A DNA stretch of 64,000 bases from Fimbriosthenelais zetlandica (GCA_977030845.1 OZ365115.1:14508001-14572000), one strand, 5' to 3'; positions 16,469-41,800 are shown, counted from the stretch's first letter. A program made the numbers and translations. The notes: generated by a model from the letters alone, not told the origin.

Positions 16469-16616
16469 NNNNNNNNNNNNNNNNNNNNNNNNNNNNNNNN
16501 NNNNNNNNNNNNNNNNNNNNNNNNNNNNNNNNNNNNNNNNNNNNNNNNNNNNNNNNNNNNNNNNNNNNNNNNNNNNNNNNNNNNNNNNNNNNNNNNNNNN
16601 NNNNNNNNNNNNNNNN
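16469..16616. other. Assembly gap (148 N)
   Basis: Run of N. Confidence 0.99.
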
Positions 16617-21025: not shown

Positions 21026-21275
21026 GACGCAAGTAAATTTTAAAAAAATGCATGTCCTTGCATTGTTTTAAGAATTGTAATGAGAAGCATCTGAAAAGCG
21101 TTAACTTATAAAGCAATCTCCTTTCAAAAACCAAAATTCTCTCCCCTCAGAAACGATTTTGACATAGAGCTGTCCCTCCATTGCATTGAGGCCTGTTTTA
21201 ACGTTGGTTTGGAGCAGGCACGGTGTTGTCCGCCTCATTGTTCATTGTTGAGTCTGCCTAATTGTTGAGTCCGCG

Positions 21276-24200
21276 TCATTGTTCATTGTTGAGGTGACTC
21301 GTGGCAGGCACGGTGTTGTCCAGTAGATGTTTGATGGCTGGCACCTTACGGAGAACTCGTGGAAGTTTGAACTGTGGATTCACACGAGCTCCCATCAAAA
21401 TAGGCACCATGGACTCAATGGTGCCGGGCTTCACCTGTACACAGGTAGAAATATTAATCAATTAATATGGGAGATGAATAATTATCAATTAATATGGGAG
21501 ATGAATAATTTCCTATTTATCTCTTTTGAGCTAGTTTCATAAACTGGGCCCTGACACGAAAGGAATGTCCCAAAACGGCCTCGACCCTCCATTTTACTTT
21601 TAATGTTACCATGGTTACTGAATGATACACACCTGTATCACCTCGACAACTGCGATGTTACCGACGTCCTTAAACCGCTTATAGGGGGCGTACATCTCCA
21701 CTAACTGACCGTCAATCTGAAATACCATTATCATATATAGATTTCAGTAAAAGAGACTTCCATTTAGGTACAGCCTGCTAGCAGGGATAACCTCTTGATG
21801 AATGTTCTTTTTTGAGTTGGTTTATTTTCTATTATTAGTTAAAATTATTATTAAAAATAGTAAATTTCTATTTTTACCTTTTCGCCCAAGTCAGACAAGA
21901 GTTCTGGATCCTTCACTTCATTAAACTCAATAAAGAAGACGTAATGTCCCTGAGTCTCTTTCCCTGTAGATCAGAAAATACATTACCTTAAATTCTTAAA
22001 ATTTAATATCAGTACAACAATTGATCTTAATGCTGCGGTATATGAAACCTATAAATATGTGCCGTTGGTTTTAAGAGACATATTTCAGTTCCAAGATTTT
22101 GATATTTGGACATTGACATTTTAACCTAGTATTTGGTCAGTGACTACATGTGCTCTCTGTGGTGGTAATATTTACCTAGTATTTGGTCAGTGACTGTGCT
22201 CTCTGTGGTGGTAATATTTACCTAGTATTTGGTCAGTGACTGTGCTCTCTGTGGTGGTATAGTTGGCCATGCCATCTTTCAGGTGTAGTTTAGTAGTTGC
22301 CTTGTCTAAAGCTTCATACAGAAACTTCTCAGGTGTTCTCTCATAGGCGATGTTCAGCCTCTGACCCAGCCTGTAGGTGCAGACAATAAATATAGTGGAT
22401 TTTCACATCACGAATTAACTATATATCATCAGAATTCATCATCGGATGTTTTAAATCAAACTATATAGAATGTATACAAGGACAATTACCTGTACATGAA
22501 TTGGTACTTGGGAAGACGATCCTCAAATCCGACTACTTTGATGACGTCACCAAACCTACACCGGTACAAACCGTTTAAGTTGGTATTTACTACTTCATAA
22601 AACTGACCCACTTCCACCTGAAATGAAGTCAAGACAAACTTAAGTTTATTGTTAAATGTTTTTGAAATTCCCAATTATGTGGAGTCTTCCAGAGAGTAGG
22701 AGACAGGGCTGCGGTCATTTACCTATTGGTCTTTGATCCATTATAGCAGTTCGGGTTGGAGAAAGACAATGAATGACTGATTGGGAGAATGCTCGTAGAA
22801 CCAGGGACCAACCACATTCCCAAGTCAACTGCTGAGCCACAGCCCGACCCCGGAGTCCCTTATATTAATGGGACCTTTACTTGCCTTGATATTATGAAAT
22901 AGATATATTATTTTAAATATAAAATACCTGATCAATGTTGACCGTGTCTGGGGCGTCCTCCTCCACATCCTCCAGTCGTACAAACTCCATGAAGCAGAAG
23001 GCGGGGTACATGGTGAAAGTTTCCCCGACCCAGGGCTCCTCCTCCATGTTCAGTCCCATCAATCCTTCAGTAGCCATATGAATAGTCCCGCACAGCTTCA
23101 CTCCCTTCATCTGTCTCTCCATCAGCTGATCTGCCAGCATCTTAAAGCCAGCTGATTTACCCATCAAGATGTAGTCCATGGTGGGCCACACCCTCCTGAA
23201 CAGCCCCACTGGTCCATCCTCCATGGCCTTCCTCAAGTAATCCGCTCTCTCCGGGTCAGACTTCAGTTTGCTGGACAGAGCAATCCGTACGTCCTCTGAC
23301 ATTGTCACCACACTGCCCACTCTCCCTCTCTCAATATCGTCACATAGATCACTCCAGTTCATCATCATGAACTTGACGAAGGAATTAGTAAGGTCGGCTG
23401 AAAATGATGAGATCTGGCCAAGTTCTGGTTCGGCCAGGGCGAATAGAGCCATGGCATAGAAAGATGATCGTTCATCCACTAGATTCTGGTACTCTACAGG
23501 AATGAGATTGTGTTTTGGCATAGTCTGAATAATGGCTTGCGTTAAGGCCCCCAGTGGTTCTCCACCTTCCGTTTTTGTCATTTTAGAGAAAATATGAAAA
23601 TGGAAAGTCCTCTTCAACGACATCATTGGTAAGAATCTCGTGTATAGTGTAACGAAAACTTTTTTCATTTCCTTCAGATATGTCTTTCTGATCGGGTAAA
23701 TTTTAGCCTGGCCTGTTGTGCCTGAAGTACTCGCATACACTAAGGTTTCGTCGTTGTATAGTATATTTTTCTCTCCATCCACCATTTTCTTGACGTACGT
23801 TCTATAGTGTATCTCTGTTGTGATGGGGTGACGTCTCTTGAAGTCAGCCAGAGTGCGAATCTCCCTGAATTTATACTCTCTCCCATACTCTGTATCTTCG
23901 TTGAGGCGTAGGATTTTCATCAGAGTGTCTATGTTGTACTGAAATTAATTGATTTAGTAAAGATTTATATGATGTTGATCTGGAAAATGATTATCATGAT
24001 TCACGATTTTTAATCAAAGATTGACAGTCAACGAGTATTAACTTTGCTCCATTATTGTACATTGTGACGTCAGAGTATAGCTATTTTAGGTCACCATGAC
24101 GACGATATCGTTTATTGACCAATCAGAGTGTTGGAAACTAGGGCAAAACCAGTACGCCATTAACGAGGAATACTGTAACTAATATTTCCCGCCTCCTTGA

Positions 24201-25509
24201 TGTCAAGCAATGTTATTCTTGGATACTAATAATGACAGCATAAGAGATGAATATTACCTTTGTCGGTTCCTTGGTGAGTTTGGTAAAGAAGGGCCGTTTA
24301 ACAGCCATAAAAATCCTGATGATAACAATGAAAACATATTGTGACAGTAGAGTGACAATAGTGTGACTGTCAGCTGGTGACAGTAGCCAGATATCCAGAC
24401 AAATCAGAGAGGCGAGAACCAGGACCACTAGTACACCACCTGAAACAATACACCCAGCTTTGGTCTTTGGTTTAAGAAATTGACATGTTATCAAACATTA
24501 CTTGCTAAAGCATTGTGAATCTTAAGCGCCTTCTACATTACACCGATCTAGGGCCCGATTTCATGATCTTAACGATCTGATAAGATCAAATTGAAGTCAG
24601 ATTAGAAATCGGCATAATGTGTGAAGATAAGATCATGATCGGGATCATTCTCTCATAGAGCTGTCCATGTCAGATCTGATGCGATTTGGGGGCAGATCTT
24701 GCATGTCCGATTTTGATCTGATCAGATCATAAATCGCCAGACCTATAGTGTGGAAGGCGCTTTAGGGATGGGTCCAGGGTCCCAGAAATGAAATAAGGAT
24801 CATTTCGCTAGAAATAAGGGCATTTCGGGGTCACAAGAGGTCCCTATAAGATCATCACATAATAATAATATTATGCATTATATGAGTTGGATATGGGAAA
24901 TGCCCACTGTATGTCAATATATAAATTTGAATCAAACTTTGAACCAATGATTTAGAACCAAATAACCCTGGTTACTATCAGTAAGTGATATTGACTATGT
25001 ATACAGCTAGGTTTCCTCTAATGTGGTATCTTATCTCCTGGGAAAAATTGCTTATTTATGAAGCACTTAATGATAGTCAAAGATCCCATGATCTTCAAGT
25101 CCTTAAATCTTTGTCTGACGGACTAATAATATTCTTAAACTATATTGCTAATTGACTAGATGAGATATAGAAATTTTTATAATTTCAAAAGGAAAATTAG
25201 CAATGCTAAGCATATGGCTAATCTTCCTTTTGAAACAGGCACCTGTGGATGGATCGAGTTGATCTAGTAGGCCAAACTCTTATGGCTTATCAAACCTAGG
25301 AAGGGCCAACCATATCCAATCAAGGTGTGTCTCTCCCAGCCTCTGAGACTAATGTTACTTTAAAAGAAAAGGTAAATACCAAATGAGATGAACCAGGTGA
25401 GTGAGGCGTTCCTTGACCAGGCATTAAAGATGTAGCTGGCCGTAGCTACAGCCAGAGCCGCCAGAAACAAGGCAGTCTGTAACGCGCGCCGCTCCCACTT
25501 CTCTCCCAT
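21276..25509 (-). CDS. GHDC: GH3 domain-containing protein (GHDC-like acyl acid-amido synthetase, ANL adenylating superfamily), tandem copy A, 8 coding exons, 642 aa
   Basis: Exons reconstructed by hand with canonical GT-AG sites and consistent phases: 25509-25380, 24439-24258, 23938-22928, 22617-22490, 22370-22222, 21963-21878, 21716-21633, 21434-21276 (1929 nt, open to TGA). GH3 motifs present: YASTSGTTG (motif 1 P-loop), HMATEG (motif 2), LYRCRFGD (motif 3), HYVFFIE and C-terminal QFKLPRV. N-terminus is hydrophobic (MGEKWERRALQTALFLAALAVATASYIF...GGVLVVLVLASLICLDIWLL). Confidence 0.92.
22125..22262 (-). repeat. 46-bp tandem repeat (3 units) duplicating the 3' end of exon 5 and its splice donor, copy A
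   Basis: Unit accaccacagagagcacagtcactgaccaaatactag|gtaaatatt on - strand; donor G at 22221, 22175, 22125 (last unit has a 4-bp insertion). Confidence 0.9.
22928..23938 (-). CDS. GHDC: GH3 copy A exon 3 (1011 nt; adenylation core with motifs 1 and 2)
   Basis: ORF 22913..23920 trimmed to acceptor ttcag|TACAAC (23938) and donor CAG|gtattt (22928). Confidence 0.93.
24525..24761. mobile_element. MITE, PIF/Harbinger type, in intron 1 of GH3 copy A
   Basis: TIR agcgccttctaca...tgtggaaggcgct with a TTA target-site duplication on both sides; gatc-rich palindromic interior. Confidence 0.75.
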
Positions 25510-26079
25510 CTTCTTCACTTTCACTCGTCCTACAGACAAGTAATCTTTCCCTGGTAGAGTTTACCTTGGTTGAGCTCTAGAACGGAGATTATCAGACTGA
25601 CTGATAATGCTTTATCTCTTAGACTAACTTAATTCTTAAGTTGAATCTAAAATTGTGCTCGGACATAATTTATGATAGCTCATGACTGTTGATTTTGTGA
25701 CTCCCGGGGGTCATAATCATAGGCTAAAAGCATCGTTATGAAACAGGCCTCATAGGCTTGTTTCATAACGATGCCTATGAACAGAAAAGCATCAATTTAC
25801 TTCATCTAAATTTATCTAAATCAATTATGAAACTTTCAATTTGATTCTCAATTTTTAATCATTATATACAGTGCCTATTTAATATTCTTTTGACAGTTTA
25901 ATTCACTGTAATAAAACCGACTGTTTCGAAACGTCCATGTAGGCTATTGACTAACACTTCAATAATATAAATTATTATTCTGGCTATTACTGTATATACA
26001 CTCCTATCATAGTAGGTCAGGTTCTAAAATTGACTTAATGGAAACTAGAAATAAACTACAAGACAAATGTTATTGGTCC

Positions 26080-26085
26080 TTTATT
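26080..26085 (-). terminator. Candidate polyadenylation signal (AATAAA) of GH3 copy B
   Basis: tttatt on + strand, about 100 nt downstream of the copy B stop codon. Confidence 0.5.
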
Positions 26086-26183
26086 GGTTTCACAGATCTC
26101 ATTGTTGAGTCTACTTTAGGGTTGAGTCTGCGTCATTGTTGAGTCTGCGTCATTGTTGAGTCTGCCTCAATATTGAGTCCGCC

Positions 26184-29100
26184 TCATTGTTCATTGTTGA
26201 GGTGACTCGTGGCAGGCACGGTGTTGTCCAGTAGATGTTTGATGGCTGGCACCTTACGGAGAACTCGTGGAAGTTTGAACTGTGGATTCACACGAGCTCC
26301 CATCAAAATAGGCACCATGGACTCAATGGTGCCGGGCTTCACCTGTACACAGGTAGAAATATTAATAAGGAAATGAATAATTTCTATTATATATCTTCCC
26401 AAAAGGACCTAGACATGAAATACTAATACCTGGTACTCCAACAGGAGAGGTATTTTACTTTTAGTGAGACTTATATATATTGTTACCATGGTTACTGATT
26501 GGTACACACCTGTATCACCTCGACAACTGCGATGTTACCGACGTCCTTAAACCGCTTATAGGGGGCGTACATCTCCACTAACTGACCGTCAATCTGAAAT
26601 ACCAAACATTGTCATAAGACATTCATGCTAGCCCTCATATTAGTTGACCATTATTTATTTATTTACATGTATGTAACTTTAATATTTAAATATTACCTTT
26701 TCGCCCAAGTCAGACAAGAGTTCTGGGTCCTTCACTTCATTGAACTCAACAAAGAAGACGTAATGTCCCTGGGTTTCTTTCCCTGTAAAGCACAAAATAA
26801 GTTTTAAATGTTGAATTGTGAAAACATGAATTAGGTTCACTATTATGAATGATATACTAGGTAATATTTACCTAGTATTTGGTCAGTGACTGTGCTCTCT
26901 GTGGTGGTAATATTTACCTAGTATTTGGTCGGTGACTGTGCTCTCTGTGGTGGTAATATTTACCTAGTATTTGGTCAGTGACTGTGCTCTCTGTGGTGGT
27001 AATATTTACCTAGTATTTGGTCGGTGACTGTGCTCTCTGTGGTGGTATAGTTGGCCATGCCATCTTTCAGGTGTAGTTTAGTAGTTGCCTTGTCTAAAGC
27101 TTCATAAAGAAACTTCTCAGGTGTTCTCTCATAGGCGATGTTCAGCCTCTGACCCAGCCTGTAGATGCAGACAATAATATAAGGTTTTTAGCTTAATAAT
27201 AGATAAATATAAGAAAGTCTTGATTGCACTTTATATACCTCATAGAAAAAAATACGAAAAGAAAAAATAGTCAAACTATAGTGAGGCTTACCTGTACATG
27301 AATTGGTACTTTGGAAGACGATTTTCAAATCCGACTATTTTGATGACGTCACCGTACCTACACCGGTACAAACCGTTTATGTTGGTATGAACCACTTCAT
27401 AAAACTGACCTACTTCCAGCTGAAAATAAGTCAAGAGAAATGTACTTTTATCATACATTTTGAACTCACTCATTTGACATTTTTATATGGTCATATTCCA
27501 TGCTCCTGTTCCTAATTTTCAGTTACAATATTATTGAGTAACAAATAAGGAACTGAAGGATGCGTCCTTCATTGGTCCTTGAACATGCCAGACATTGGCG
27601 ACATGGCTGACCTTTATATGCCTCTAACTGTACACAGTGGAAAAGAAGGTATACATGGGAGACATGTTATCCCATTTAGATCAATGTCAAATTAGTAACA
27701 TACATGGAAAATTACTTGTTCTTTTGCATTTGTATACCAATTATATCCTAATGTCCTAATTATAACCTACCTGGTCAATGTTGACCGTGTCTGGGGCGTC
27801 TTCCTCCACATCCTCCAGTCGTACAAACTCCATGAAGCAGAAGGCGGGGTACATGGTGATAGTCTCTCCCACCCACGGCTCCTCCTCCATGTTCAGTCCA
27901 GTCAGTCCTTCTGTAGCTCCGTGAGCAAAGCCTACCACCTTCACTCCCTTCATCTGCCTCTCCATCAGCTGATCTGCCAGCATCTTAAAGCCAGCTGATT
28001 TACCCATCAAGATGTAGTCCATGGTGGGCCACACCCTCCTGAACAGCCCCACTGGTCCATCCTCCATGGCCTTCCTCAAGTAATCCGCTCTCTCCGGGTC
28101 AGACTTCAGTTTGCTGGACAGAGCAATCCGTACGTCCTCTGACATTGTCACCACACTGCCCACTCTCCCTCTCTCAATATCGTCACACAGATCACTCCAG
28201 TTCATCATCATGAACTTGACGAAGGAATTAGTAAGATCTGCTGAAAATGATAGGATCTGGCCAAGTTCTGGTTCGGCGAGAGAGAAGATAGCCATGGCGT
28301 AGAAAGATGCCCGTTCTTCCTCTAGATTCTTGTACTCTACAGGAATGAGGTTGTACTTTGGGATTGCAATAAGGGCTTGGGATCCAGCACCCAGTGGTTC
28401 TCCACCTTTTGTTTTGCGCATTTGTGAGAAAATATGGAAAAAGAAGTTCCTCTTCAAATTCAGCATAGGTAGAAGTTTCATGTACATCAGGCCCAGAGCT
28501 TTCCGTATTTCCCTCAGATATGTCTTTCTGATCGGGTAAACTTTAGCCTGGCCTGTTGTGCCTGAAGTACTCGCATACACTATGGTTTCGTCATTGTATA
28601 GTATATTTTTCTCTCCGTCCATCATCTTTGTTACGTACGTTCTATAGTGGGTCTCTGTTGTGATGGGGTGACGTCTCTTGAAGTCAGCCAGAGTGCGAAT
28701 CTCCCTGAATTTATACTCTCTCCCATACTCCGTATCTTCGTTCAGCTTCAGGATTTTCATCAGAGTTTCTATATTGTACTGAAATATACATAACATATAA
28801 TGTAGTTAGAATTATTCTGATACAAAATGACAATTCCTTCATTTATGGAACAAGTAAAGCAGTAAGGTCTTGAACAGAGCGTTTTGCAGTTGCGTTCATG
28901 GTGCAGGAGACTATAGAAGTTGCTGGCTTTCTTTGACAAAAACACAAGCAACCATAAGCCTTCTGTGTTACCTTTTGTGGCTCCTTGGTGAGTTCGGTAT
29001 AGAAGGGTCGTTTAAGAGCCACATAGATCCTGATGACAGCAGTGACACCATATTGTGACAGTAGAGTGGCAATAGTGTGACTGTCAGCTGGTGTCAGTCG

Positions 29101-30099
29101 CCAGATATCCAGACAAACCAGAGAGGCGAGAACCAGGACCACCAACACAGCACCTGAAACATTACATTCTATTACATTTCTTGGGACAACTATTTCTATA
29201 AATAGCGATCGTGGTTGTGCCCTGCTGCAGGCCATTGTACAACCATAGGCTAGAACATTGTTATATAAAAACCAAATCTGCATGTAAATACAATGGGCAG
29301 TATAGGGCCTTATGTGTCTATTTCTGATCATACTTCTGTTGGATAGAACCCTTACAATACACTTGCATATTTACATATACATATTTAAATATGCAATAGG
29401 CGGATGTCATTTCATAATATACAATTATACATACTTTGACATTTGTTAGATATTTAGTTGTAGGCCTATACTACAGAAAACTTATCTTCTACATGTGACA
29501 AATATTTGCTTAATACTTTATTGTTTTTTGTTATATTTGCTAAGCCTGATTAGATTATACCAAATATCCTTCTATGGACTTTGATTTAATCAATACGCCT
29601 CTAATCTGGTATTATATACTGCAGCCTTATTTCTCTAGAAATATAATGTATATTTTCCCTATTATTGAAGCACTCAATGTCTATAGAGATTATCCTGGCA
29701 TGTTCAGGCACGGATTTAGGATATCAATATAAAAAGTATTGATTTGATTTCATTCCTTTCCGTGTCCTTTTGGCTTGTGCACATACATAATATTTTTTTT
29801 AATGAATTGCTATTATCTAAATATCTAGTTACTATTTCTTCAAAAATCTCCAAAAGCGTAGACCTGAAGTTGGTCACAAAATTTGAGTCGCAGATTTCAG
29901 GTGAAATCAACAAAAGTATCATGATTGTGCAGAAATTTAAGAATAATTATAAGTAAATCTAGAATTTACCAAATGAGATGAACCAGGTGAGTGAGGCGTT
30001 CCTTGACCAGGCATTAAAGATGTAACTGGCCGTAGCTACAGCCAGAGCCGCCAGAAACAAGGCAGTCTGCAGCGCGCGCCGCTCCCACTTCTCTCCCAT
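26184..30099 (-). CDS. GHDC: GH3 domain-containing protein (GHDC-like), tandem copy B, 8 coding exons, 641 aa
   Basis: Exons 30099-29970, 29153-28972, 28778-27771, 27419-27292, 27158-27010, 26782-26697, 26593-26510, 26342-26184. Sizes and phases match copy A, except exon 3 is one codon shorter. Motifs YASTSGTTG, HGATEG, LYRCRYGD, QFKLPRV. Confidence 0.92.
26862..27048 (-). repeat. 46-bp tandem repeat (4 units) duplicating the 3' end of exon 5 and its splice donor, copy B
   Basis: Donor G at 27009, 26963, 26917, 26871; units alternate cagtg/cggtg (92-bp dimer). Confidence 0.9.
27771..28778 (-). CDS. GHDC: GH3 copy B exon 3 (1008 nt; adenylation core)
   Basis: ORF 27756..28796 trimmed to acceptor ttcag|TACAAT (28778) and donor CAG|gtaggt (27771). 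Confidence 0.93.
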
Positions 30100-30404
30100 C
30101 TTCTTCGCTTTCACTCGTCCAAGTAAAATAATACTCACTTAGTGAAGTGGTTATATCTGGGCAGGGATTATCAAGGAGATTATACCTTATCTGTTTAACA
30201 TGAACTTAAGCCTTATCTTCATTGTGCCATTGTGCTATTGATACCTGGAAAAATAGCGTACATGTGAAGGAAAATTGCACCAGTGGATTTTGAGCTTTTC
30301 CTATCTGGTGCCAACCATTAGTATTGCTAATGCTATGGGACATTTCTACGCTGAAACAGGCCCCAGATCTCCTGAGAGATCTTTGTGAGGTGTCTAAGGT
30401 GAGA

Positions 30405-30635
30405 GGTATATAAAGGCTAGCCATGTCCCCCCTGTCTGTGGTGAGAGACAGGTAAAAGACAAGCCATGTTTCCCACTGTCTATGGTGAGAGGCATGTAAA
30501 GGGCCAGGCATGCCTTCCACTGTCTGTGGTGAGAGGCATATAAAAGGCCAGCCATGTCTCGCATGCACTGCCTATGGTTAGGGTCATGTATTGGTGAGAG
30601 GCATGTAAAAAGCCCACTGTTTGTGGTGAGAGACA
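30405..30635 (+). repeat. 44-bp SINE-tail minisatellite upstream of GH3 copy B
   Basis: About 5 units of agccatgt...ctgtggtgagaggcatgtaaaag. Confidence 0.7.
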
Positions 30636-31490
30636 CTTCAATGAAACCACAATCATTTGCCCAACATTATCAGATAGAAAAAGATCAATATAGGTCAGTA
30701 ATATGAGAAGCCACTTGACTTGCCTTAAAAGAAATAAAAAATAATCGTTTCACTTTCCGAGTCGACCAAGATACAAGTGAAAAAGCTTGCCATATCATGC
30801 CTCCAATCAGGATCTGGTGAATTATTAATACTATTACGACAATGGTCGCTGAGAAAAACGACGGTCATTAATGACGAAACAGCTATCTCACTTTAAAAAA
30901 TAATCTATAGCTGATACTAGTGCAATATCCAGATACACCTACAAGGTGGATAATTATACTAAATTATTTCAGATTATTTTTGAACATTGTTTCATCGAAA
31001 TCCCCTCTCAGGGACCTACTTATTTGATGCCATTTTCATCAAGAACATGAGAGGTTTTTAAGAAAGGAAACAATAATTTACATCAAATATAATTGAAGAA
31101 AAATTGAGAAATTGTCAAAGATAATATATTTAGGATTAATTCACTACCCTGTCGATTGAACAAGTTGACAGTTGACATCTATTCATTTTTAAAGCTGAGA
31201 AAGCTAAATAAAAGTCACTTTTTCTTTATTTTTATGTCATTAGTGACTTTGTGAAAATGTCTTAATTGATGAAGTGTTAATTATAGATGAAGCTTTCCTT
31301 TCTGTAAAGCCAATAAGTCATGATTGTTGCCTTTAGCCGGTTTGTACTCGGGCCGTGTGAATGAACAATTAAAGACGATAGACATTTAACCTCCAGAGTC
31401 ACTCCATGACTTCTTTGGTGCATGTTACTTAACTTATTCTAGGACTAATGTTTCCAGTCTGGAACTTTTTCCTTCTTGGAACAAGACTTA

Positions 31491-36777: not shown

Positions 36778-36983
36778 NNNNNNNNNNNNNNNNNNNNNNN
36801 NNNNNNNNNNNNNNNNNNNNNNNNNNNNNNNNNNNNNNNNNNNNNNNNNNNNNNNNNNNNNNNNNNNNNNNNNNNNNNNNNNNNNNNNNNNNNNNNNNNN
36901 NNNNNNNNNNNNNNNNNNNNNNNNNNNNNNNNNNNNNNNNNNNNNNNNNNNNNNNNNNNNNNNNNNNNNNNNNNNNNNNNNNN
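36778..36983. other. Assembly gap (206 N)
   Basis: Run of N. Confidence 0.99.
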
Positions 36984-38869: not shown

Positions 38870-41800
38870 ACTCTCACCAATCTTTCTGTGTGCATAGAGT
38901 CAGATTATTCGTTCATATTTGCATCGCTGCTGTTGTTTTTCGCAACAATTTGCAGTGGGGCTACAGCTGTCTATGACCTAAGTTGGTTTCTAGTATTTTC
39001 TCCGCCAATGCCCAGCCTAGAATCTGGGTCAAACAGTATGAATATAGGTCATAGTAAGGAGTTTAAAACTCATCGATGATCAGTGATAAATCCTCTTTAA
39101 ATGATTATAGAAAAGGAAAACATTCTTAAGCAAATCTCTGGTTATTAACTGTATCTCTCTCACTCTTCTCAGCGAAAGAATCTTGGGCCAGAATTGATGT
39201 TGTTAATGGGGCCAACGCTATGCAATCATTCTTTATTTGTTTGTTTTATTTTTAAGATCATATCAGCAATTTCTCAGTAGTCTCAATAATATTTACCAAT
39301 AGAAAGCTAAGCTAGGCTTTCTGTCCATGAGTTGGTATTGTCTGGTAGTACATTGTATTGGGTTCTGGTAATGATGTAGACTGGGTAGCATGTGAGTGAG
39401 TGGGATGGAGCAGTAAAAGACACTACCCTCGTCCCACGGGACTCACAACCCTCCCACGGGAAGTGACATCATCATGAAAGGTGACGACATTACGTCCCCA
39501 CGACGCGTCGCCATGACAACTGTTTTATTTACTGATGTATGAGTTATTTCCGCTCCCCGACTTACATGGTCTTGTGTTTCGATATCTCTACATGTTCCAT
39601 CATCATGCCTGACCATTTCATGAATGTATATTGCCCATTTCCAGACTCATTCTTCTCCCTTAACTTCCCCCTCTTTTCTTCCCCCTAGACTTGTCCGAGT
39701 CTTTGTATTGTTCTTTTGTCTTTGTCTATGAGAAACCAATGTAGCTAGGTTTCTATTTTATTTTCTATATTATTTTCTATTCCTGAACCTTTATTCACCA
39801 TTCACCTTTATTTATTGCATGCAATAATTGCTTTATTTTGTTTTATCCTAACCTCCACAATGATTTTTGCCTGTCGGAATTCTGCCATTATTACCTCGAG
39901 AATTGCCCCATTTATCAATCCTATCCGCTCCCCTGTTTCATGACTATAAAATATATTAGAATTGCACTTCTTGGCTAAAAAAAACTATATTGGATATTAC
40001 AAAAGCCGCTTATACTGAAAAATGTTTTCAGGAATGCTTGTCTGGTTCGTTTCCAATTTGTTTGAATTGCTGCACATAGTTTAGCAGAAATCAATAGGGA
40101 AGTCGTCGGCCTTGGTATGACGTGGGTTGGCGTCGCCATGCCGACCATTGGACCATTCACCTCTGACCTCTCGTCAATTCCCGCGGGCCCGAGATCACGC
40201 GAGACTTCATGAATGGGCGAGACTTGGAGCCGGGGAGTTGTTGGTTGGAGTGGGAAGAGCTATGAAAGGAGAGGAAAGGAAATCATGAAAAATTGACATG
40301 TTAAAATTGTAAGTGTTCGTGCTGAATTTTTTGGCTGAATTCAAGGGGAAGGGATGATTGGGAAGACGGGTGGGGGAGGGAAGGATGGGAGGGAGGGAGG
40401 GGGAAGAAGTGGTAGTGAGGGCGAGTCATAAAATGGCAAACTTGGCGAGGACCCATCATTCGGGGGCGAGAAGGTCAGGGAGGGTGTTGGAAATGATCAG
40501 GATGCTCATTGTCTGTACGATGAAGTGAATGAACGGCAGGGAGAAAGCCAAGGCGAAATTTTGTCGGTGAATTATTTTATTCTAAGATCAGTAATTCTAA
40601 GATTCATGCCATCAGTAAAAAAAAATCCTTTTGTCTTTTCTTTATCTGTATATATCTCTGTCTCTGTGTATGTCTGTCCCTCTCTCTATCTCCCTCCCAT
40701 CTCTGTCTGTTTCTGACTTTCTGTCTGTCCCCATTTCNNNNNNNNNNNNNNNNNNNNNNNNNNNNNNNNNNNNNNNNNNNNNNNNNNNNNNNNNNNNNNN
40801 NNNNNNNNNNNNNNNNNNNNNNNNNNNNNNNNNNNNNNNNNNNNNNNNNNNNNNNNNNNNNNNNNNNNNNNNNNNNNNNNNNNNNNNNNNNNNNNNNNNN
40901 NNNNNNNNNNNNNNNNNNNNNNNNNNNNNNNNNNNNNNNNNNNNNNNNNNNNNNNNNNNNNNNNNNNNNNNGTGTTTTTCTGGCATCGCCCATCACACTG
41001 TTGTAGCAGAATGCAGCCCCACCAAAAGACAACATAATTGTCTGCCGACTTAGACATGCAATACGCTGTGACATGGTATTGAACCAAAACCTGCATCAGT
41101 GGAGTCCGGCCTTTAATGATGGTTTACAGCAAAATCGCACCAGTGAATCCTGCCTTAATGACTACCGTCAGCTCTACCCTTCATAATAATAATTAGTAGA
41201 CGAATTAATTATCACATTAGAAAAAAAAGCACACCCTTTCTTGCTGAGAAATGAATTTTAATATAATTATCACATTAGGCGTGTTTAATGAGGTGTAGTG
41301 TTTGTTTGTGACTTCGGCTCTGTGTTTGTGGGGGGGGGGGGATCAGTCAGGGGGGGGGGGGGGTGAGGACTAATTAGCCTGTATTGGTAGAGTAATGAAA
41401 GCTTTGATCCCAGTCCAGGCTTGATCCCCGTCACGCTCTGCTGATTACAGATCTCCATCAGAGAAACTCGTCATTAAATTTTAAACGGTGAACTCAGGGA
41501 GGATTGTACCCAACCTGACCTACTCACTCAAACTGCCGACTAAAGTTGGATCCGATTCTCTATCCGGCTCCATCCGATAACTGTCCGAAGCTATATTTCT
41601 ATTTACACCAAGTGCTTGTTATTTTAGCAGTCCTTTACACTTAGGTAAGGCTAACAATGGACACAATTTCAATCTTTAGATGTCAAATGTTAGAAATAGG
41701 GGTTCGGATGGCAAGGGATTGGAGAATTGGATTAGTGTGATTAGAGAATCGGATTAGTGTGTTCTAAGCTTTAGGATATACAGTTAAGCACAGTTTCCAC

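Follow-up and report, generated by a model that had tools for sequence, protein, structure and literature searches.

Two head-to-tail genes on the minus strand at positions 21276-30099 of a 64,000-nucleotide (nt) stretch of the Fimbriosthenelais zetlandica genome (GCA_977030845.1 OZ365115.1:14508001-14572000; the whole stretch is called the window here) encode predicted membrane-anchored acyl-acid amido synthetases of the GH3 family, enzymes that in plants couple carboxylic acids with amino acids. The exons and introns of these genes, copy A and copy B, form a DNA-level mosaic that arose by non-allelic recombination or short-tract gene conversion, and the differences between their third exons cluster in three short patches that align to the acyl pocket of plant GH3 enzymes. 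The explanation that we favour, with slightly better than even confidence, is that A and B belong to a family evolving in concert, in which the patches are protected from conversion because the paralogues accept different acids. All coordinates are positions in the window, and the gene models were assembled manually from the DNA. Both are eight-exon genes with GT-AG introns throughout and with frames uninterrupted by stops (Table 1).

Judged by sequence and modelled fold, A and B are full GH3-family enzymes in every comparison that we made. Pfam scans and structure prediction used the exon 3 translation (337 codons), exon 4 was also scanned against Pfam, and the full-length spliced products were compared by hmmsearch with a profile of animal (invertebrate) GH3 proteins. 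Exon 3 matches the GH3 N-terminal domain PF03321 at 178.8 bits in A and 180.4 bits in B (cut-off 23.6; about 1e-52), and exon 4 matches GH3_M, PF23571, at 56.8 bits (2e-15). Over positions 4-588 of the animal profile the full-length proteins reach E-values of 5e-205 (A) and 5e-200 (B), and the family profile itself matches the sequences of plant GH3 crystal structures end to end (about 1e-117), reaching plant residue ~576-595. An AlphaFold2 model of copy A exon 3, built on an alignment of 80 homologues (predicted local distance difference test, pLDDT, 94.4; predicted template modelling score, pTM, 0.90), has template modelling (TM) scores of 0.81-0.86 to GH3.5, GH3.6, JAR1 and PBS3. When that model was given to Foldseek, the top 28 matches were all plant GH3 structures (query TM-score, TMq, 0.77-0.86; E down to 2e-21).

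The nucleotide-binding motifs of plant GH3s read S-SGT-x-G-x-x-K, Y-x-S-S-E and G-L-Y-R-Y-R-x-G-D (PMC12493201), and all three are present in both copies. Motif II takes the form H(M/G)ATEG, in which the Glu is kept and Ala-Thr stands in place of Ser-Ser; motif III, GLYRCR(F/Y)GD, and the C-terminal Lys in QFKLPRV are intact in A and B. The initial annotation, which was made from this DNA alone, had described both genes as intact, and their complete open frames, canonical splice sites and intact catalytic motifs agree with that description. Ahead of the GH3 domain lies a stretch of about 104 residues, encoded by exons 1-2, in which a Kyte-Doolittle scan shows two to three hydrophobic segments. 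It corresponds to positions 4-46 of the invertebrate GH3 profile, and its linker carries a motif, LDIW.L.PADSHT, that is also conserved where invertebrate homologues have their N-terminal extension.

A global protein alignment places 70 amino-acid differences between A and B in 642 positions, and their distribution is strikingly uneven. As the initial annotation had reported, exons 1 and 8 encode identical protein, and the 104 residues of exon 3 from SFSADL to QMKGVK are identical with exactly 4 silent changes. The three variable patches that it quoted were found again at their coordinates, patch 1 differing at 11 of its 14 positions. Identity extends to the DNA in exon 7 (84/84 nt) and exon 8 (159/159 nt). 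The C-terminal domains differ by a single residue, so any difference in specificity or function would lie in the N-terminal domain or the anchor. Within exon 3, 23 of the 40 aligned patch positions differ, against 22/296 in the remainder (p=5e-13). The three patches hold only 25 of the 70 differences; 45 lie elsewhere, 16 of them in exon 2 (A 24258-24439 vs B 28972-29153), where 16/61 residues differ at a ratio of nonsynonymous to synonymous divergence (dN/dS) of ~0.9. The third hydrophobic segment of the N-terminal region is strongly hydrophobic in A and not in B. The variability of exon 2 had no place in the earlier account of the differences.

Silent sites follow the same uneven pattern. 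For exon 3 as a whole, Nei-Gojobori estimates from our own script give dN 0.078, dS 0.285 and dN/dS 0.27 between A and B. Divided by segment, dS is 1.13, dN 0.46 and dN/dS 0.40 in the three narrow patches (41 codons); 0.45, 0.107 and 0.24 in the remaining variable zones (81 codons); and 0.14, 0.018 and 0.13 in the rest of the exon (221 codons). In a sliding window, the variable zones have higher dN and also a dS of 0.6-1.3. Of the codons at which A and B agree on the residue, 20/79 (25%) in the variable zones carry a silent change vs 33/462 (7%) elsewhere (Fisher p=8e-6), and the longest stretch without a silent change is 87 codons (run test p=0.003). The 104-codon block has a dS of 0-0.06 between A and B and of 0.06-0.17 between all paralogues. 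Every paralogue pair in the genome, including pairs on different contigs, repeats this profile, with dS of 0-0.17 in exons 1, 5, 7, 8 and the 104-codon block, 0.33-1.6 in the two variable zones, and low values again at the end of exon 3.

The paralogues came from a search of the organism's own genome (447 Mb in 79 contigs), which returned 13 matches to exon 3. A and B had been presented as a pair, and this proved too narrow: the genome holds four intact genes, A and B together with a second tandem pair (C25c and C25d), as well as three decayed copies and more distant paralogues. Alignment of the introns, compared with a shuffled control, clearly shows the mosaic. Between A and B, introns 1, 2 and 3 align only at the level of the control. 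Copy B intron 1 is 91% identical over ~800 nt to intron 1 of C25d, 12.5 Mb away, and introns 5 and 6 of copy A are 95% identical to those of C25d. C25c and C25d have introns 2-4 in common at 92-94% and do not share introns 1 and 5. In a map drawn in 100-nt steps, copy A is 62-76% identical to every paralogue across patches 1-2, and over exon 6 with intron 6 its identity to C25d is 96%. At exons 7 and 8, the identity of A and B carries on for 20-45 nt past the exon ends, into introns and 3' untranslated region (UTR), before it collapses. Silent heterogeneity is thus greater than chance would give, and the nearest relative changes from segment to segment, non-coding segments included, as in concerted evolution.

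Two other origins for this pattern were considered and rejected. Conversion templated by RNA, through complementary DNA, is ruled out by the identity that enters introns for 20-45 nt and by whole introns common to non-adjacent paralogues; mis-assembly of two haplotypes as the source of the pair is ruled out by the lack of homology between A and B in introns 1-3. Quartet site patterns in the coding sequence mostly join A with B and C25c with C25d, reflecting the recent C25c/C25d duplication, and are uninformative on recombination, unlike the introns.

Where the patches fall relative to the acyl pocket was mapped by pairwise and profile alignment (~1e-117) to plant GH3s together with predicted secondary structure. 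The pocket of AtGH3.6 is formed by Tyr134, Leu175, Tyr178, Tyr179, Phe184, Thr193 and Tyr195, and further by Val231, Ile312, Met337, Ala339, Ser340 and Ser341 (PMC9894192); that of OsGH3.8 by Arg130, Leu137, Val174, Leu175, Met337, Ala339 and Tyr344 (PMC10747189); and that of JAR1 by residues 113-125 and 335-336 (PMC12493201). Plant positions 130, 134 and 137 (R130, Y134 and L137), on the helix after motif I, align to patch 1. The loop and helix at 174-195 align to patch 2, and positions 337-344 (M337, A339, S340, S341 and Y344), in the beta8-turn-beta9 element at motif II, align to patch 3. The initial annotation had placed the patches at the acyl pocket, and this much of that claim stands: they align to three pocket-lining elements, and A and B differ at 7/15 of the positions aligned to the pocket and at 38/321 of the other exon 3 positions (p=0.0014). 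Enrichment at pocket-aligned positions reaches p<0.05 in 9 of the 10 paralogue pairs of the genome, among them C25c/C25d (4/15 vs 23/321, p=0.025). The same three profile segments are also enriched for differences among five close paralogues of Lingula (19/45 vs 84/480, p=2.6e-4).

Each intact gene carries its own combination of residues at eight of these sites. At exon 3 positions 91/95/132/136/137/286/288/293, copy A has M F L I I I M L, copy B has I L G L I A G L, C25c has L L G V R Q G F and C25d has L L G A R L G F. On this alignment, L or G at 132, I, A, Q or L at 286, M or G at 288, and I, R or F at 137 would change the volume or charge of the pocket. Copy A shares L132 and M91 with the distant paralogue on contig 11, which indicates that part of its distinctness is retained ancestry.

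These observations suggest how the family may work and how it may have been shaped. By homology with plant GH3s, each enzyme would bind ATP and a carboxylic acid in its large N-terminal domain and form an acyl-adenylate; the C-terminal domain would then rotate, and the acyl group would be passed to an amino acid or amine. We infer this course of adenylation and amidation by analogy. The membrane anchor suggests a lipophilic acid, and such an acid is probable also from the precedent of OlsH of Singulisphaera acidiphila, a bacterial GH3 that joins a fatty acid to ornithine using ATP (PMC12493201). Gene conversion or other non-allelic recombination keeps most exons near-identical, silent sites included, and old divergence persists in the three short segments and in exon 2, which encodes anchor and linker. 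Each paralogue has its own residue combination in the pocket-aligned segments. The most likely reason, we infer, is that conversion into those segments is selected against, because the paralogues each accept a different acid.

Several observations weigh against different acids as the force behind the pattern, and some of them speak for its main rival, to which we give a clear minority of our confidence. In this rival the mosaic is neutral: the least-constrained patches and exon 2 diverged early and then lacked the homology needed for conversion, and the substrates are the same or overlap. A sliding-window dN/dS had been proposed as a check, and the ratio is indeed locally raised, being about three times higher in the patches than in the rest of exon 3 (0.40 vs 0.13, pooled). 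Between A and B, however, it runs from 0.24 to 0.72 in local windows, lies at 0.3-0.7 in the patches and never exceeds 1, so it does not demonstrate positive selection; relaxed constraint would give the same numbers. Positive selection was rejected on these ratios as the cause of the clustering, and the initial annotation went too far in describing the enzymes as selected for different acid substrates. Silent differences are just as concentrated, silent divergence being 4-8 times higher in the patches than elsewhere (dS 1.13 vs 0.14), and taken with the mosaic of the introns this means that the contrast comes largely from conversion homogenising the rest of the gene. Many of the patch replacements are conservative (K/R, M/I, F/L, L/M), and exon 2, which lies outside any pocket, is as variable as the patches. 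Plant GH3s with near-identical pockets can differ in substrate profile, so the pocket is not the sole determinant (PMC11253546).

The pocket mapping itself has points that count on the same side. The mapping rests on alignment at ~22% identity and not on three-dimensional distances, the helix of patch 1 has a 5-residue deletion relative to the profile, and two alignments disagree by one residue in patch 2. Very close pairs in Lytechinus and Hypsibius, with few differences to test, show no enrichment in the patches. In the searched literature, no paper assigns a substrate or an enzymatic datum to an animal GH3 or GHDC protein; the initial annotation had likewise known of no established substrate for animal GHDC.

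What argues against a neutral mosaic is where the differences fall. They lie on pocket-aligned positions in nearly every paralogue pair, in the proportions given above for A and B, and the same segments vary in Lingula. The young C25c/C25d pair, which has little silent divergence in the patches, is enriched at these positions too: its patches carry six nonsynonymous and one synonymous difference (Nd 6, Sd 1), a dN/dS of 2.0 that is not significant and is the sole value above 1. Several of the changes, at 132, 137, 286 and 288, also alter side-chain volume or charge.

A further possibility, which we consider improbable, is that the variable segments tune something other than acid choice: the amino-acid or amine acceptor, proofreading of the adenylate or, for exon 2, interactions with membrane or partners. 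In plant GH3s the N-terminal domain houses the acceptor site as well, close to the same helices (PMC12493201); the acyl site alone does not decide which substrates are selected (PMC11253546); and exon 2 makes the third N-terminal segment of A and that of B differ in hydrophobicity. Yet the varying residues align to acyl ligand or inhibitor contacts in GH3.6, OsGH3.8 and JAR1. Finally, that one copy is a silent or decaying duplicate, looking intact only through conversion from functional relatives, is very improbable: the family does decay (C38, C39f, C39e), a search for sequencing runs (RNA for copy A exon 3, any kind for the whole of gene A) returned none, and use of a wrong exon 5 donor would shift the frame, but both copies retain open frames, canonical splice sites, intact motifs and a dN/dS well below 1 even in unconverted zones.

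Specificity-protected patches in a concerted family have parallels in part. Concerted evolution with islands of divergence, in which conversion between duplicates is interrupted where the copies differ functionally, is familiar from opsin and globin duplicates. The family described here resembles such cases in its near-zero dS over most exons, its sharp peaks of dS and dN, and nearest relatives that vary along the gene. It differs in comprising at least 4 genes, arranged as two tandem pairs 12.5 Mb apart, with tracts of ~150-300 bp around small exons.

Among known enzymes, the plant GH3s (AtGH3.5/3.6, OsGH3.8, VvGH3.1, JAR1/GH3.11, PBS3/GH3.12 and GH3.15) belong to the same family and share the fold over about residues 105-630, all three nucleotide-binding motifs, and variability in the pocket elements that set acid specificity in plants. 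They are only ~20-23% identical to A and B, which have an extra N-terminal membrane anchor of ~104 residues and a shorter helix after motif I (the 5-residue deletion), and which are genes of an animal genome. Closer likeness is found in predicted invertebrate GH3-like proteins of Lytechinus ('JAR4-like'), Lingula ('GH3.9/GH3.12-like'), Haliotis, Dimorphilus and Hypsibius ('GH3.1'), which are about 640 residues long, combine an N-terminal extension with GH3, and are often in tandem on one contig; those of Lingula are in tandem and vary in the same three segments. Identity to these is 31-35% over exon 3, and their names are automatic and plant-derived. By sequence, A and B are ordinary members of this family, for which predictions exist from sea urchins, an annelid, abalone, Lingula and a tardigrade. 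Among 1.8 billion cluster representatives, no sequence comes closer than 47% identity.

Bacterial GH3s are 25-31% identical to exon 3. OlsH is a GH3 outside plants with a lipophilic acid and so a functional precedent for lipid substrates; it differs in being soluble, 526 residues long and encoded in a lipid-synthesis operon, and a link of A and B to ornithine lipids is not implied (PMC12493201). Vertebrate GHDC (LGP1) is, like A and B, an animal GH3-domain protein for which the searched literature gives no established substrate. Its domain GH3_N_vert, PF25146, matches A and B weakly, at 27.4 and 25.9 bits, below the cut-off of 34.1, inside the GH3 domain and away from the N-terminus. Because of that score the genes are not filed as GHDC orthologues.

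Both genes and their surroundings contain short tandem repeats (Table 1). A 46-nt unit repeated in tandem spans the donor of exon 5 and the final ~37 nt of that exon; C25d has one additional partial copy of it. Only the first donor is in frame with exon 6, since the next adds 46 nt and shifts the frame. A 17-nt repeat (unit about GACTCAACAATGAGGCG on the gene strand) takes up the 3' UTR from the stop codon onwards, and each of its units holds an in-frame-looking ...AACAATGA that resembles the true gene end. The 44/88-nt repeat ahead of copy B yields overlapping repetitive open reading frames (ORFs; 'CLSPQT...') at 30206-30656 on the minus strand, and the region upstream of copy A has no counterpart of it. 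Ten adjacent ORFs of the window (123-199 residues) gave no match to Pfam, so no host or neighbour gene is identified. The window has three runs of N, at 16469-16616 (148 nt), 36778-36983 (206 nt) and 40738-40971 (234 nt), and both genes are free of them.

Table 1. Coordinates of the two GH3 genes, their features and their relatives in the genome (window positions unless a contig or locus is named; aa, amino acids)
Feature	Position	Strand	Remarks
Copy A of the GH3 gene, start to stop codon (642 aa in 8 exons)	21276..25509	-	GT-AG introns, open frame
Copy A exons 1-4	25509-25380, 24439-24258, 23938-22928, 22617-22490	-	
Copy A exons 5-8	22370-22222, 21963-21878, 21716-21633, 21434-21276	-	
Copy A exons 1-2, predicted N-terminal membrane anchor and linker	24258..25509	-	hydrophobic at residues ~9-31, 34-68, 68-92
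Copy A nucleotide-binding motif I, STSGTTGQAK	23702..23731	-	same in B
Copy A patch 1, KEMKKVFVTLYTRF	23633..23674	-	predicted helix 85-105 of exon 3
Copy A patch 2, GALTQAIIQTMPKH	23510..23551	-	aligns to plant pocket segment 174-195
Copy A patch 3 and motif II, LCGTIHMATEGLM	23057..23095	-	predicted beta-turn-beta
Copy A exons 7-8 and short flanks	21200..21790	-	both exons 100% identical to B
Copy B of the GH3 gene, start to stop codon (641 aa in 8 exons)	26184..30099	-	GT-AG introns, open frame
Copy B exons 1-4	30099-29970, 29153-28972, 28778-27771, 27419-27292	-	
Copy B exons 5-8	27158-27010, 26782-26697, 26593-26510, 26342-26184	-	
Copy B patch 1, REIRKALGLMYMKL	28473..28514	-	
Copy B patch 2, GAGSQALIAIPKY	28353..28391	-	one residue shorter than that of A
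Copy B patch 3 and motif II, VVGFAHGATEGLT	27900..27938	-	
Copy B intron 1	28973..29969	-	without detectable homology to intron 1 of A
104-codon block identical in protein	A 23096..23407; B 27939-28250	-	
Exon 5 donor repeat, copy A	22124-22259		2.9 copies of 46-nt unit
Exon 5 donor repeat, copy B	26860-27047		4.1 copies of 46-nt unit
17-nt 3' UTR repeat	A 21244-21283; B 26098-26191		2.4 copies in A, 5.5 copies in B
44/88-nt tandem repeat	30391-30557		~300 nt upstream of copy B start codon
C25c, C25d	contig 25, 12.5 Mb from A/B on same contig		tandem pair; intact, 8 exons
C25c/C25d extracted loci	contig 25: L013 3422-6900; L018 2101-6275		
C39e	contig 39 (L014/L015)		exons 1-2 not found; GA at exon 4 donor
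C39f	contig 39 (L014/L015)		truncated exon 3 only
C38	contig 38 (L016)		frameshift in exon 3
Three distant paralogues	contigs 11, 1, 27		33-50% identity

In summary, the pattern of the patches suggests that copies A and B each handle a different acid. The four intact genes are natural variants that are near-identical except for ~40 pocket-aligned residues, and they offer a ready experimental handle. If their specificities differ and follow the patches, they would represent a GH3-type small-molecule conjugation system in animals; if not, the family would cleanly illustrate how islands of divergence are retained during concerted evolution. It is tempting to speculate further, and only tentatively, that invertebrates carry a battery of membrane-bound, ATP-dependent GH3 ligases making distinct acyl-amino-acid conjugates, such as lipo-amino acids or conjugated signalling acids, with a 'pocket code' of about 10 residues that selection protects against conversion. 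Were that so, animals would possess an equivalent of the hormone conjugation of plants, and N-acyl amino acids would be made by a route independent of coenzyme A.

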